DNA from: Perna viridis | Taxonomy: Eukaryota | Assembly (NCBI GenBank): GCA_037379345.1 | Contig: CM074520.1 | Coordinates: 18,703,488 to 18,767,487, forward strand | Reading direction: 5' to 3' | DNA: 64,000 bases | Shown: piece after piece, positions 1 to 7,279 of the stretch | How positions within the stretch are numbered: the first letter of the stretch is position 1 | Layout of the letters: each line of letters begins with the position of its first letter | Position numbers and translations under genes: made by a program | Notes under the pieces: generated by a model | What the model saw: only the letters and a program-made list of their open reading frames with translations | Told to the model about the DNA's origin: nothing | Databases searched by the model: none

Positions 1-939
1 AAAAAAAAAACAACAACAAAAACACAAACAAATAATAAAAAAAACAAAAACAAAAACAATTACGACTCTATAGCATCTAAATCACAACTTGTATATTCAC
101 GCCACTATGGAAGAGGGAGGTATGACGCACTGTAAACATACATTTAACCCACCATTTCGTTTGAACTGTCTGTATCAAGTAAGTCAGAATCATTGCAGTA
201 TCAATCGTTCCGGTGTTTTATATTTATTTTGGACTTGACTTGATTATGGATCGGATAAGTGTTGGTTGTTACCCTTATTTTGAAAGTGGTTATAATGTTA
301 TAAACGTCTATTCATAAACAAAAGTAAGTAATGGTGTGCATCGACAAAAAAAGTGGGCACGTGTATCCTTTTATATTGCAAAAATATATATACTTCTAAA
401 AAAAGGAATATATTTATTCATTAATTTTATTTTATATTTTATATAGTTATAAAAAAATATATTTTTATTCAACTTATAAACAGCAACAAGCAAATACTAT
501 TTTGTATACAATACAAAAAAAAGTAAAGTAAGAATAAGTTTTGTTTTTGAAATGTCCTGATAAAATTTTGGAAAGGCTGTTGCAAAGTATCATTTTAATC
601 TTCTACTGAAACAATCATGTAAGACACCACCTACAAGAACGAAATTCAACATAGTTATTTGATGAATAACAATTCTCAAAATGAGATAATTATACAGACC
701 TTATTTCTAAATTACTTTAAACTACTTCAATTATTTCATTTCATACACATTAACGCTTTAAAATAGTACGTTGATTGAAAATGTCAAATTATGATTTGAG
801 AAATAAATTTACATATGATTGTACCTTGAATCAAAATACTGAAGTATATATGTAACTCTTATGGGACGCTATCTTCATTTTATAAAAAATATGAGAATTT
901 ACGTGCTTCGAGTTCTCGTCTGTTGGTTACATTTTATAG

Positions 940-1021
940 TCTGTGCTGCTCGAACTGCCCCATCTGCCCGACAGTCTCTTAAAGATCACCTTGCTATCAC
1001 TAACTGTGGCCATCTTGAGGC
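940..1021 (+). CDS. PL13-like gene, internal exon (CAARTAPSARQSLKDHLAITNCGHLEA)
   Basis: tttatag| acceptor, |gtaagt donor, GC-richer than flanks, phase fits next exon. Confidence 0.65.
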
Positions 1022-4000
1022 GTAAGTATATATATTTGTGTATTTTATATATTTGTGTATTTGAACAAAGTAAGTTTAGTTTTGTAGAGTTTGTTATTCT
1101 GATATTTGTTTCTGTTTTATATTACACGAACGTAATACACATATTTAATATGATATTGTTGATTATTATTTATATCATTTTGAATGTAATTTTATCAAAC
1201 AAAATATTCTGCATAACACCTAAGTTGACATATTTTAAACATACCGCAGAAATAGGTACAAAGTGCAAAAAGCATAAATTAGTATAAATGTATTGAACTG
1301 ATTGTTGATTTTGATTTTCTATCATTATACAATGTAACACATAAAACGTCAAGCTCCGAAACCATAATCCATAAATTAGGAAGAAACATATTTCGTCCAT
1401 TGCAATAATCACAAAGTACAGACCAATTTAGAGCCCATTCAAAAGTATTAAAACGGAACTTCAATACATCACCTACGACCTAACATGTCATTGTTCCTCA
1501 CTCTATCGGTATCGATGTTTGCATGAAGTTCTACGGCTTTTCGATTTATCAATATACTTAAGTTCTTGTATGGTCCAGACTTTTCATTTAAATAATGTAA
1601 GGACAGAATTTTGCTTATTGATTCCATAGGCCTACACTTTTTTATTTTACAATTTCATTTCTGGCTGCAGCTCGAGGTATATCATTTATATGGATATAGG
1701 GGGCCACTCAAAACGGCTAGAATACACTAGATGGACTACAATTGAAATATTGTAGTACGATGTATGAAGTATCCGCTAGTCCGCTAGATAATTTCAAATT
1801 TATTTTTAGCTTATACCCAAAGATTTCATTATTATTTTATTACATTACCAAGTAAGTTTAGTGTGAATTGATTTAATTTTTTATTTTAATGAAAAAAAAA
1901 ATCTTTGAATACTTAAAAAAGGCTATTTTTCATTTTCCAACTTTGTTTCATCCATACAAAATTACAAAATTACATTACCCATCCTGCTATACTAATCCGT
2001 ATATAATGGGAAGTTTACCCAATATGAAGATTGCATTTTATTGTACATGTAACTTTTTTTCTAATTGCTAGCTAATGTATTCGAATTTTTTTTAAGAAAT
2101 CATATTTGTTCTAGAAACCGTCGTACAATAGGAATTCATAGAAATAGAAAAAAAAAATAGCGATACATCTATATACAGCCGGTCTCTAATGTTTAAAAAC
2201 ATCACTAGACGGTACATATGCTTTTTATTAAATCCAAAATGCCAGAATTTGCCAAAAAAAAGAAAAAACAAAAAAACAAAACAAAAAACGAAAAAAAAAA
2301 AAAAAACAAAAAAACAAAAACAAAAACAACGTGGTCAGAAGCTCACGAATGAAATAAATACAAAATATACCAGTTTAAATATTGTAAATATCGATATGCT
2401 ATACATGTATTTCTAGAATTAACCTTTCATCAGCAGCATTAAAATCAAATATGTAGGAAGATCGTAATCAAAATATTAGTTGTTAGAAGTATTCAAAACC
2501 AAAATTATCGAAAGAAGAAGCCAAATTCATCACCGAGAAGTTGTACCATATGCAATGCAAGGAATGAAGCCTCAATGTTTTACGTATTTTTTAAAAAATT
2601 TGGAATATTTCTTAATAAAGGCAGATAAAATATGATATAATTCGGGGTCAGACAATAGGAATACGAGACGAACTACAAACACAATAAAGCAAACACATTA
2701 AAATAAACGAAAAAGAAAAAAAATGATTATTAAAATTTACATTTCCACGAAATGTGTAGAAGTCGATTCCAGTTTCTTTATCAATCTTTTGAGAAACATA
2801 TCGTCAATGGAACTGCTTATAATAAATCGAGGCAGCGCAAAACAAACTGGAAATCAAATTTCATCGAAATTGAACAACTTTGAATTTTCATCGCGGGGGC
2901 GGCCATTTTGAAAATGGCGATCGATATGTAGTTCAAATTATCGATGGAGCCACAGATTCTTAATCGGGGCGTCTTAAAAGAAGTCGCTTTCCGTTTCCTG
3001 ATCAGTCTTTTGAGAAACATATCGTCCATGAAACTGCTTACAATCAATCGAGGCAGCGTAAGGAACCTGGATATCAAATTTCATCGAAATCGAACAACTT
3101 TGAATTTTTTATGGCGGTGGTGGCCATTTGGTTGTCAATACGTAGTTTAAATTATCGATTGAGCAGCAGATTCTTAATCATAGCGTCTTAAAAACCTATA
3201 CATCAATGTTCATCAAAATCTGACAACTTTGAATTTTTCGAACGCGGTGGCAGCCATTTTAAAAAAGGCGGCCGATCCATAGCTTAAATTGTAAAATAAG
3301 CCACAGATTATTAATCGGGGCGGCTCAGAGAACATAGATATCAATTTTCATGGAAATCGGACAAATTTGAATTTTCGACCGCGTTGGCGGCCATTTTGAA
3401 AATGACGGCCTAGTCGCACGCGATTTTTTATCGTGATTTTGTTTGGACTATTGAGCTTACTATATACACCAAGTTGTGTCAAATTCTGATAAGCACTTTT
3501 TCGAGATATATGATGTTCCAATTCCGGTGTAGAAAAAATGGGTACGCCTAGTCCGGCGGCCATTTTAAAAAGAAATGACGGCCATTGGAATAAAATGTTT
3601 AAAGTTCTGCATCTTTGGAAGAGTAGTTCTAACTTCCTGTGAAGTTTCATCTAAATCAGATAGGGCGTTTCTGAGAAAACGTGCGGACAAATAAATAATT
3701 TTTTACGACAGGAGAATTAAAATAATAATAAGAAACACAGTAAAAGTAATAGGTCTCCGCCACTTCGTGGTCGCCAACTTAATAATAGTAATAATAAGAA
3801 ACAGTACAATAACAACGTGTCGCCCGACATTCGTCTGGGGCGACATTATAATAAGAAACACAGTGAAAACAATAAGTCACCGCCAATTTGTGGTCGGCGA
3901 CTTAATAAAGATAAGGAAAACAAGACCAAAACAACAAACTAAATAACTAGCAATATAAACTCCTTCAAAATTAGGAATAACATCAGGTGTCCGGAAGGGT

Positions 4001-6794
4001 AAGCATGTCCTGCTTCGCAAGATGCAACCGTCACATTGTAAGTGAGTATAATCCCGTTAGAGTCTTGTTACACTAATTTAGCGACCCCACATACTTTGTC
4101 ATGGCAGAGTCACAGAGAGGGTCCAACAATGATTATGGGCAACTGTTGATTAATGTAGATAAACAACACATTACAGTTCATTATTTGAACTAAACGCTAA
4201 CAGTTTGATCATGAATTTGATAATTAGAAATAGATAAAGCATGCAAAAATTACAATAAAATTATTTAACTTTTTTCTCGAATTCTAAAGTAAGTAAAAGA
4301 AATTGTATCTTTGTCTCATTGCAATGACCTTACATGAGTATAATGTCATTTAAACCGGAGAAAATATGTTTGCACCTTTGTTATTCACACAACCTAGCTA
4401 TACATACATATCTCGAACACAATATATCGAAGAAGCCACGTCACTTTAGCAAGATGTATATGTCAATCCAGTAAGAAGTGAAATATTTTCTCATGTGAGA
4501 TAGAAACTTCATATCGGCCAATCCAGTAACAATAACGACCGTAAAAAAATTAACAAAGTATAAATAAATTCAATTAAAGGGCATTTAAGGCAATGGTAAC
4601 GGGAACATTTGAGCATCATGATCAAAAAGCGATTTTTTTTGTAGATTTTACTGATGTTTGTTTTTATTTTAGTCCTCCACCAGCGGCGCAATATCAGGAA
4701 GGAAATTTAAACTGCAGCACAACAACATACGAAGAACCATCTAACTACAGTTACTATGACAACGAAAGAATCATGATTAAAGCATCATCTTACTATACAG
4801 CGTTCAAGGGATTTCTTAACTTCAAAGAAAACACTCCAAAGTATTGCTTTAGTAATAGCAACCAAGGCCAACTTCTCGATTCATTTGATATTCATTTCAA
4901 AAGGTACAATTAAGTGCAAGTTAAGAAATTTGTCTTTCTTGTTAATTTTTTACAAATACGGGACGTACTCGACAAAAAAGTTGGCTACATGGGTCTTTTT
5001 TTTTTTCTTATACATCATCTGAAGTTAATTTTGCCCAGAAAAAAATAAAGTTTTTAGTTAGAAGAAATATACATAATAATGATAAAAAACTATATTATAA
5101 AGTTTTTTTTAATATGATTGTTTTACTTACTAAATCAATAAGAGTTCTTAATTGTTTACTATTTTTAGAAATGATATTCTCAATTTTTAATGCAGTCATT
5201 CTATTTGACAAAAAAGCATGTGCATGCCAAAGCAAATACAGTTGGAAATAAACAATGTTTTGTATAAATATATAATTGAATAGTTGAAAAAAATCAAATC
5301 TACCGGATAGTTTAAAAAAAAACACACTTAAAAAAAAAAGATTTTAAAGAAAATGTATTTGTTAGTTATGTATATAGCCAGCTATATATTTCGAAATGAT
5401 AAACAAACATATTTTTATAAAGCCATCCAGAATTTTCAGTGTTATTCTGTTATGTGTTCGCTCTCTTGAAAAGAGTAATCAAGGGAACCAAGGTCATAGC
5501 GGTAATCAAAGGAATGTAATCCAGGGACAAAGACCAGACATGGAAAACAGACATACACAACAAAGTAATTAAAATCATACATACAAAGTAACAAAAGTAA
5601 ATGAGCTACTCGGACTTCACTAAAAACTGGAAGTATTTAGCTTACAACTGGTAGGGTAAGCGTCCTTTTTTTCTAGAAACACCCGCCGAGTTGCTCGTAA
5701 AAAGTCAAGTCCGGGGTAGACAAAGAAAAGTGAAAAGACACATTGTCACAAAACGAGATTTTCTTTTTCAACCGAACGTTTTCATTTTAGTTTGATATAT
5801 ATTTCTATTAACATGCAAATTTTCGTATTCCTTTTAAAGCCAACACATACTGGTATCTCTTGTGCAACAGTAAATCATTTGAAAAAAAGCTTTCATAAGA
5901 ATCATGATCGATTGTTCAGTATAATAATTTGAAATAATTTATGCAAAGAATATGAAATTTTTCGCTTTTAATCCATTCCTTTTCTGTAGTGAGTCACCAC
6001 AAAAGCTTGTAGGTGTTGAGTTAACGCCTTGTCGTGGAAGTTACTGGACTAATGGAAAAGTGATATGTTTTCCATGGGAATGTGATCGGTTTTCATACAG
6101 AAATGGCAAGTATGATGGCACCAGCTATAGAAACCTTGACGTTGAAATAAACATGCATGACTTGAACAAACTTCCTGATGGTACTTCCATTATCAAATTT
6201 GAAGGATCATCAGACCCAAGAACTATATACAATATTGAATTAAATGAAACCGATTACCTAACAACACAACAATTTCTTTCATTTTGTAAAGATGATGGTC
6301 CTTGCTATAAAGGAAAATTCCTTAAGAACAACAATGTATTATACCAGTATGGTGGTCGTCCTCCTCTTGAAATGATGAAACTTGGCAACAAAGCTGTCAT
6401 TGGATTTAGGTATGATCCTAGGGATTTTATTTTTCCAGAGAAATCTTTAGACAAAAGATGCTCTTTCAAAGCCAACGTTAGCTCAGAGATATGTAATTCC
6501 CCATCTGGTAGACATGCATGGAAGATTTTGTGGCAATTTCCGCTACCTTTTCCCCAGGAATGGCTGAAAATTAACTTTTTTGTAGGATTTTCATATCTAA
6601 CGGACTGCACATTTGACCTTTATGTATATATCAACGGGAAGAAGAAACAATTTCTCTCTGCCAAAAGTCCTTGTGGACAACATGCAGACATGAAGTTAGG
6701 ACATTATCCGTACCCGACAGTTGGCGTGTATGGAAAAGATAAAAACGGGGATGGAGAGTTTAAAATGCGATTCCGTGGCATCAATATGTGGTAA
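940..6794 (+). CDS. Heparin lyase I (polysaccharide lyase family 13)-like beta-jelly-roll protein; spliced, 5' end not found in window
   Basis: Exons 940-1021, 4673-4903 and 5990-6794 have AG/GT borders and matching phases (GC|T, AG|T), about 372 codons. AATAAA at 6996-7001. Blocks IIKFEGSSDPRT..LTTQQFLSF, QYGGRPPLEM, KILWQFPLPFPQEWLKINF and YPYPTVGVY are collinear with heparinase I blocks as I recall them (AQWHGAPSRT..LSIEEFLAL, QGGYPPLAF, IAYKMPFAQFPKDCWITF, YYFKFGIY). Confidence 0.72.
2365..2580 (+). repeat. Dispersed repeat, second copy at about 45875-46070
   Basis: Shared ATACCAGTTT..ATTGTAAATAT.GATATGCT, TATGTAGGAAGATC, TGAAGCCTCAATG. Confidence 0.7.
2730..3906 (+). mobile_element. Non-autonomous Helentron/HINE-like element with internal GGCGGCCATTTTG subrepeats and triplicated hairpin end
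   Basis: GGCGGCCATTTT-type motif near 2897, 3118, 3249, 3386 and 3556; three AATAAGAAAC..hairpin..TTAAT modules at 3726-3906. Confidence 0.65.
4673..4903 (+). CDS. PL13-like gene, internal exon
   Basis: ttttag| ... ag|gtac; open frame PPPAAQYQEG...DIHFK. Confidence 0.8.
5470..5722 (-). mobile_element. Penelope-like 3'-end copy
   Basis: Shares terminus AAGAGTAATCAAGGGAACCAAG with other copies. Confidence 0.85.
5990..6794 (+). CDS. PL13-like gene, terminal exon (lyase-like domain)
   Basis: ctgtag| acceptor, 268 open codons to TAA, polyA signal 200 nt downstream. Confidence 0.88.
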
Positions 6795-7279
6795 AACCTA
6801 CACTGGTCTCAATCATTGAATTGTATTGGCTGCTGTGTTAACTTGTTACAGTCTTAACCCATAGTAAATAAGGCAGTGAAAAAAATGCACACGCCATCAG
6901 TCTGCCTTTCTTAAGTCATGATTGTAAAGTTTTTGTCTATCAAGATTGGTATCCATTTCATTGTTTTCTTTATTTAGCAATTGCTAGTTCTTGTTAATAA
7001 ATCATGTTTTGACTATATATGAATTTGTCTATCTTAAATATTGGCATATGTCAACTACGAAAACAACAAAGATTGGAATTTTTTCCGTTGCAAAAAGATA
7101 AATTTTAAAGCTAGATTTAAGTGTAACGAGTGCAAAACTGATGTTAGGACAGACACATTGTTCCAAGAACAATTACAAGAACGTGATTGGTCCTACTATA
7201 TATTACGTGTATATGCAAAGGTCTATTCTTTCCCCTTTCTTTAGTAATTCCTTACTCTCTGGAGCACCCATCAAAATTT

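Follow-up and report, generated by a model that had tools for sequence, protein, structure and literature searches.

A mussel gene family with a predicted heparinase I (PL13) fold and replaced catalytic residues

To judge from the literature searched and the matches obtained here, heparinases of polysaccharide lyase family 13 (PL13) are bacterial enzymes, and searches of that literature found no account of a molluscan gene resembling PL13 or heparinase. The thumb, jelly roll, and Omega loop of heparinase I were defined in a study of BeHepI, in which Glu240, Trp266, Asn363, and Asp364 make up the Ca2+ site and Tyr375 contacts the product (PMC13714783). The catalytic base of the His/Tyr system of heparinase I is H151, with R83, K353, and R344 nearby (bioRxiv 10.1101/2023.02.14.528460), and entry 3ina of the PDB is titled as an H151A mutant. 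The gene considered here lies in a 64,000-nucleotide stretch of the genome of the mussel Perna viridis (assembly GCA_037379345.1, contig CM074520.1, forward-strand positions 18,703,488–18,767,487; hereafter the window). Its three exons on the + strand (891–1021, 4673–4903, and 5990–6794) encode a product of ~388 residues, the C-terminal part of which appears to retain the heparinase I fold, with other residues at the positions of the catalytic base and of a calcium ligand.

The original prediction, made from the DNA alone, held that this gene resembles bacterial heparinase I, and structure comparison bears the resemblance out. The input to each search, fold, and alignment was a single exon or natural Mytilus proteins at full length. 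Exon 3, modeled with AlphaFold2 on a 17-sequence alignment, has a predicted local distance difference test (pLDDT) score of 77.4, with residues 1–40 below 50, and the feature sought, a beta-jelly roll with the thumb insertion of PL13, is present in the model. The confidently modeled jelly roll and thumb comprise exon-3 residues 43–267 (6117–6791, + strand) and superpose on approximately residues 103–376 of heparin lyase I. When the model was submitted to Foldseek, the top seven matches were heparin lyase I in every case (E 1.2e-10 to 6.9e-10, TMq ~0.6), and the next family followed at E 6e-3, a gap of seven orders of magnitude. Pairwise superposition with VIA-align gave Z 16.8–17.0 against heparin lyase I (model residues 32–267 on chain residues 103–376; 215–228 residues aligned at a root-mean-square deviation of 3.1–3.8 Å), while the PL20 and PL7 lyases reached Z 10.5 and ~10, respectively. 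Sequence identity to bacterial PL13 is 16–18 per cent. By the predicted structure, the C-terminal ~225 residues keep the heparinase I fold, and the homology to PL13 may be regarded as solid.

A second line of evidence comes from the comparison of sequence profiles. A PL13 profile was assembled from 15 diverse PL13 sequences of the protein database, and a Pedobacter africanus heparinase I was obtained by scanning genomes for the back-translated motif AQWHGAPSRT; among another 300 genomes sampled from the same phylum, one more heparinase I was found. Aligned with hhalign, the mussel family profile matched the 15-sequence PL13 profile at 87 per cent probability (E 4.1e-6, 138 columns) and the single Pedobacter heparinase I at 52 per cent. 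Three thumb-less PF14099 proteins encoded by the same Pedobacter genome scored 1 per cent or less, so the profile signal is specific to PL13. The strongest sequence similarity in these alignments falls on the thumb-like subdomain, exon-3 residues ~74–125 (6210–6365, + strand; SDPRT..TTQQFLSFCKDDGPC..GGRPP). Among language-model neighbors, 29 of 30 carry PF14099 (score 0.94, 180 of 256 features shared), and once PF14099 is excluded, the next neighbors belong to other jelly-roll lyase families, among them PL14, PL7, and 'Polysacc_lyase-like'.

More conventional sequence searches found little. The original prediction had proposed a check against Pfam PF14099, and this came back empty for the protein encoded in the window, which matches no Pfam family at E ≤ 10 in hmmscan. 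Some of its relatives do have PF14099 as their top Pfam hit, at collinear positions with a best E of 0.0016; these scores of 12.7–16.9 bits fall short of the gathering score of 29.9 bits. No PDB sequence was matched by phmmer with the window protein, and the family profile produced only chance-level matches there (a branching enzyme and a mannanase, E 0.14–0.18). The PF14099 hidden Markov model (HMM) did not recover the loci of this family in their own genome, a family HMM (A1) found no match in two bacterial genomes that encode heparinase I, and a word-index search with the family profile gained no bacterial relatives. The sole PF14099 score in the mussel genome belongs to a locus elsewhere (C6:37527162-37527443; 18.6 bits, E 0.45) that is interrupted by three in-frame stops and was set aside as a probable chance match.

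The extent to which the active site has been rewired, as was originally proposed, can be read from the profile alignment. Residues of the enzyme are given here in B. thetaiotaomicron (Bt) numbering and those of this gene in exon-3 numbering. The segment FAQWHG of the bacterial enzymes aligns with IIKFEG, the same pairing of QWH with KFE that had been recognized in the DNA alone. The catalytic base His151 thus corresponds to Glu71 (GAA, 6201–6203, + strand), in a column that across the family holds E, A, I, M, D, G, or S. Gln149 corresponds to Lys69 (6195–6197, + strand; mostly K or R in the family), and the Ca2+ ligand Glu222 to Gln119 (Q, L, M, S, or F). The Ca2+ site of heparinase I (Glu222, Asn345, and Asp346) is further altered in that the Asn-Asp pair is aligned to His-Ala, one residue beyond which there is a conserved Asp.

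Toward the C-terminus the mapping relies on a low-confidence extension of the same alignment, in which YFKFGIY is paired with YPTVGVY and Tyr357 (Tyr375 in BeHepI) with Tyr247 (TAT, 6729–6731, + strand). Tyr247 sits on strand 241–247 of the model, in agreement with the extended alignment, and the proposed reading of FKFG as PTVG is upheld to that extent. The accompanying claim that the tyrosine is kept applies to the window copy and three paralogs and fails for the family as a whole: the column holds Y, F, M, L, or N, and Phe is found in all Mytilus proteins. The position of Arg344 is occupied by Gln and that of Lys353 by Thr in this copy, where most relatives have R and K/R, respectively. What the family does conserve is the scaffold, namely the jelly roll, the thumb (where C..GPC supplies a new Cys pair), and the D.R, GG.PP, and YDPR blocks, and most of its members keep the basic cleft residues.

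One further pairing in the original prediction, RTE read as GVE (RTELS against GVELT), gains no statistical support. Exon 2 alone matches the PL13 profile at a probability of 0.18 per cent, and the opening 64 residues of exon 3 match it at 0.13 per cent. At exon-3 residues 7–13 (6009–6029) the paralogs have [AS]RVE.T where heparinase I has GRVELS, the segment that contains Arg83 (Bt numbering); this pairing is collinear by eye, without statistical support, and the Arg83 position is Gly in the window copy.

The gene was originally described as a spliced, intron-containing animal gene spanning 940–6794, and both the splicing and the end of the span are confirmed, while its start is moved upstream, since 940 falls within exon 1 and the initiating ATG lies at 891. 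Together the exons measure 1167 nt (131 + 231 + 805), or 388 codons plus a stop. Exon 3 (5990–6794, 805 nt, + strand) has 267 full codons, nine Cys, and the PL13-like domain, and ends with TAA at 6792–6794; its entry at 5990 is preceded by a polypyrimidine tract and AG. It lies within a plus-strand open frame of 280 codons (5952–6794) that holds all of the motifs first quoted for the gene. Exon 2 (4673–4903, 231 nt, + strand) lies between the acceptor TTTTATTTTAG and the donor GTACAA, and its 76 full codons, with two Cys, encode an N-terminal segment that the family conserves (..YT.F.G.L.FKDNTP[KR][YF]CF..) and that was aligned with the N-termini of the Mytilus proteins. Exon 1 (891–1021, + strand) was delimited by sequence and splice signals, with a phase-2 end before the donor GTAAGT, and begins with a hydrophobic, signal-peptide-like stretch MRIYVLRVLVCWLHFIVCAA that would be followed by ~23 mature residues with one Cys. 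Its assignment draws on homology, namely counterparts upstream of three paralogs and a resemblance to the N-terminal end of the full-length Mytilus proteins (371 residues), and no reads covered it in the public runs examined. The many cysteines that had been remarked upon number 12 in the predicted mature protein (nine in exon 3, two in exon 2, and one in the mature part of exon 1). Intron 1 (1022–4672, 3651 nt) and intron 2 (4904–5989, 1086 nt), both on the + strand, are GT..AG introns in phase 2.

Direct evidence of splicing is found in contigs of two public runs (X1 and X2), in which 4903 is joined directly to 5990 and the 1086-nt intron is absent. The X2 contig spans 4683–4901 and then runs on into exon 3, and the contigs of the two runs cover exon 3 at 5988–6119 and 6374–6849. 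In all six genomic copies of the gene the matches to exon 2 and exon 3 are 0.45–2.1 kb apart, and no intronless copy is among them; the joined form must therefore derive from RNA. Exon 3 is also weakly covered in one raw RNA-seq run (X8), where first mates map only to the minus strand, as befits a transcript of the + strand, and it received no cover in another (X9).

Both introns contain repeats. Intron 1 has moderate cover by RNA reads and contigs at 2250–2850 and 3650–3850, with fixed differences from the window, and these stretches are probably dispersed repeats whose other copies account for the matches. Within intron 2, positions ~5450–5850 reach an enormous depth in all four runs (contig word depth to ~1e5; 350–450x in raw RNA reads), with many joints that go back or skip and loose ends at 5470, 5565, 5669, and 5724. 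The pattern suggests an element of very high copy number, transcribed and partly in tandem, that is no part of the gene.

It might be asked whether the whole finding is an artefact, either of bacterial contamination in the assembly or of a structure predictor that returns a generic beta-sandwich match, particularly as the single protein drew no match in Pfam or among PDB sequences and the model was built on an alignment of only 17 sequences. This is very improbable. Contamination is contradicted by the GT-AG introns and spliced contigs, by six paralogs on two chromosome-scale contigs, by orthologs in five Mytilus species, and by base composition, for the DNA around the gene has a G+C content of 30 per cent, like the rest of the AT-rich window (28–35 per cent throughout). 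A generic fold match is contradicted by the gap between Z 17 and Z 10.5 and by the sequence-profile signal, which arrives independently at the residue pairing originally proposed. The artefact reading is effectively refuted by these observations, and the gene is unquestionably integrated in an animal genome.

The 723-Mb genome has six copies of the gene, all with open frames; contig C10 carries four of them and C11 the other two. Homologs of exon 2 lie 0.45–2.1 kb upstream of exon 3 in all five of the other paralogs, and the donor phase is 2 in each of the three (L002, L004, and L005) in which the 3' end of exon 2 was read; intron 2 is older than those duplications, since this phase is common to the three. 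Between copies the proportion of synonymous differences (pS) is 0.68–0.90, so that synonymous sites are saturated, against a proportion of nonsynonymous differences (pN) of 0.19–0.35, and the ratio of the corresponding rates (dN/dS) is 0.06–0.23 where it could be computed. The paralogs are old and under purifying selection, and the domestication that was originally proposed fits these six intact copies. In the family tree the window copy pairs with its neighbor L002, and its branch is longer than those of the other five. L002 (C10:18690080-18690865) is a tandem paralog ~19 kb upstream, outside the window, with 53 per cent identity and its own exons 1 and 2; its cleft positions hold Arg, Lys, and Tyr, as against Gln, Thr, and Tyr in the window copy.

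Outside this genome the family is sparsely represented. A phmmer search of 1.84 billion representative proteins returned eight matches, of which seven are family members (one being the window protein itself). The eighth (P0010), a metagenomic cadherin-like repeat protein matched in five stretches at E 5e-9, was set aside as an artefact of composition or repeats. Named relatives are confined to 'uncharacterized' proteins of 369–371 residues from five species of Mytilus, on chromosome-scale contigs of up to 140 Mb, and the remaining family matches are Logan and ENA fragments under SRR23320465, ERZ26168041, and ERZ25067879. Three of the relatives from Logan contigs (P0023, P0006, and P0011; e.g. 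contig L015) have a Ser/Thr/Pro-rich C-terminal stretch followed by a hydrophobic tail, a sequence feature that suggests tethering to the membrane, either directly or through a glycosylphosphatidylinositol anchor. The Mytilus coruscus homolog (P0012, UniRef A0A6J8CUD7) is named 'GON domain-containing protein' in UniRef. That identity was discarded, as the Pfam GON model (PF08685) misses the family and matches other multi-exon loci of the genome on C1 and C7.

Acquisition from a bacterium, as was originally suggested, fits the narrow distribution of the family and its specific affinity to bacterial heparinase I, in which the thumb is included; it is plausible, not proven. No closer bacterial protein emerged from the phmmer search, the word-index profile search, or the family HMM run on two bacterial genomes, and a tree that nests the animal family inside bacteria could not be built because identity to bacterial PL13 is so low. 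These observations also accommodate vertical inheritance from an old eukaryotic gene of the jelly-roll lyase type that most animals have lost, or closest kin in non-bacterial families that are as yet unsampled. Such an origin would be in keeping with the great age implied by conserved introns and saturated dS, and eukaryotic jelly-roll lyases do exist (fungal PL20 and PL7, molluscan PL14). It is nonetheless rather unlikely, given that the named relatives are confined to Mytilus, that so vast a library yielded so few clusters, one of them spurious, and that the thumb is matched by bacterial heparinase I only, with thumb-less PF14099 proteins and the PL20 and PL7 lyases falling well behind on profile probability and Z, respectively.

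The positions of both His151 and Tyr357 drift under purifying selection, and thus the function of the family cannot depend on the His/Tyr chemistry of heparinase. The signal-like exon 1, the 12 Cys, and the stalk and tail of some relatives point to an extracellular location, where the product would be a secreted, disulfide-rich protein that in some relatives is membrane-tethered. With the His base, the Gln, and the calcium-ligand Glu of heparinase I lost and the Tyr acid position free to vary, the cleft retained between sheet and thumb may bind anionic or sulfated polysaccharide, and the protein would act outside the cell as a lectin-like pseudo-lyase that cleaves no glycan.

The original prediction had allowed for either a glycan binder or an enzyme of altered chemistry. 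In the latter case the protein would still be a lyase or another glycan-modifying catalyst, employing Tyr247 and a new base (Glu71 or a residue from the N-terminal part) in a site re-invented in the window paralog. The tyrosine of this copy and three paralogs, the intact cleft-forming fold, the purifying selection on the family, and the precedent of molluscan jelly-roll lyases (the Aplysia PL14 enzyme is among the structure hits) all accommodate such an enzyme. It is unlikely for all that: the residues at the His and Tyr positions change freely within a family that is under selection, a carboxylate base beside a polyanionic substrate would be chemically unfavorable, the calcium-ligand Glu is gone, and in the window copy the equivalents of Arg344 and Lys353 are gone as well. 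Of the two possibilities first raised, the binder is the one favored here.

Several observations weigh against a non-lytic glycan binder descended from PL13, or at least against its details. The Pfam model misses the mussel loci, and the family HMM misses the bacterial enzymes. For the N-terminal 160 residues, from exons 1 and 2 and the beginning of exon 3, there is neither a confident model nor detectable similarity to heparinase I, and in the model of a full-length Mytilus protein the N-terminal 131 residues are below pLDDT 50; a different catalytic residue could conceivably be supplied from this region. The C-terminal residue assignments depend on the low-confidence extension of the alignment, and the Gln and Thr that stand in for Arg344 and Lys353 weaken the case for an anionic ligand in the window paralog. 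Expression is also very low in the two raw RNA runs (X8 and X9). With these points taken into account, a secreted or surface-tethered, putatively non-lytic binder of anionic glycans derived from bacterial PL13 is given about an even chance of being the correct description. The fuller scenario, in which a mussel lineage captured a bacterial heparinase I gene that gained introns, a signal peptide, and disulfides and was duplicated into non-catalytic receptors of sulfated or anionic glycans, some of them membrane-tethered, is more tentative and has a somewhat less than even chance.

With this mussel family, which is multi-copy, interrupted by introns, and maintained by selection, the PL13 fold would be extended to animals. 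If the scenario is true, this would be the first animal protein family derived from PL13 and an instance of an enzyme turned lectin after horizontal transfer, adding a case of probable passage from bacterium to mollusc with subsequent loss of catalysis. A natural scaffold in which evolution has altered the heparin cleft and the thumb could also offer insight into the specificity of heparinase I and a source of new glycosaminoglycan-binding modules.

Among known systems, the closest comparison is with heparin lyase I itself (PL13, PF14099; Bacteroides thetaiotaomicron, B. eggerthii, and Pedobacter; PDB 3IKW, 3INA, and 9GRW). A jelly roll with an inserted thumb is found in both, and blocks of sequence occur in collinear order (mussel/bacterial: IIKF.G..D.R/FAQWHGAPSR, TTEEFL/STEEFL, GG.PPL/GGYPPL, YDPR/NSDR, and YP.VG.Y/YFKFGIY). 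The mussel gene differs in its introns, signal-like peptide, and 12 Cys, with only 16–18 per cent identity remaining; the heparin-contacting Lys and Arg are mostly unmatched in its product, and the N-terminal third is not recognizably similar. The PL20 glucuronan lyase (2ZZJ) and the PL7 alginate lyases have the jelly-roll core in common with it (Z 8–10.5), but these, like other PF14099 proteins, lack the thumb, align over only 130–150 residues, and give no profile–profile signal. The PL14 enzyme AkAly30 of Aplysia kurodai (PDB 5GMT) is a precedent for a secreted jelly-roll lyase in a mollusc genome, but it belongs to another family (Z 8.3, 11 per cent identity), is active on alginate, and has no thumb.

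The nearest parallel in evolutionary course may be the chitinase-like lectins of family GH18, in which dead carbohydrate-enzyme folds have been reused as lectins. There, too, the fold and cleft are kept, the catalytic residues are replaced, and the proteins form a secreted, multi-copy family; the two differ in that their folds and ancestry are unrelated and that glycan binding by the mussel proteins is putative.

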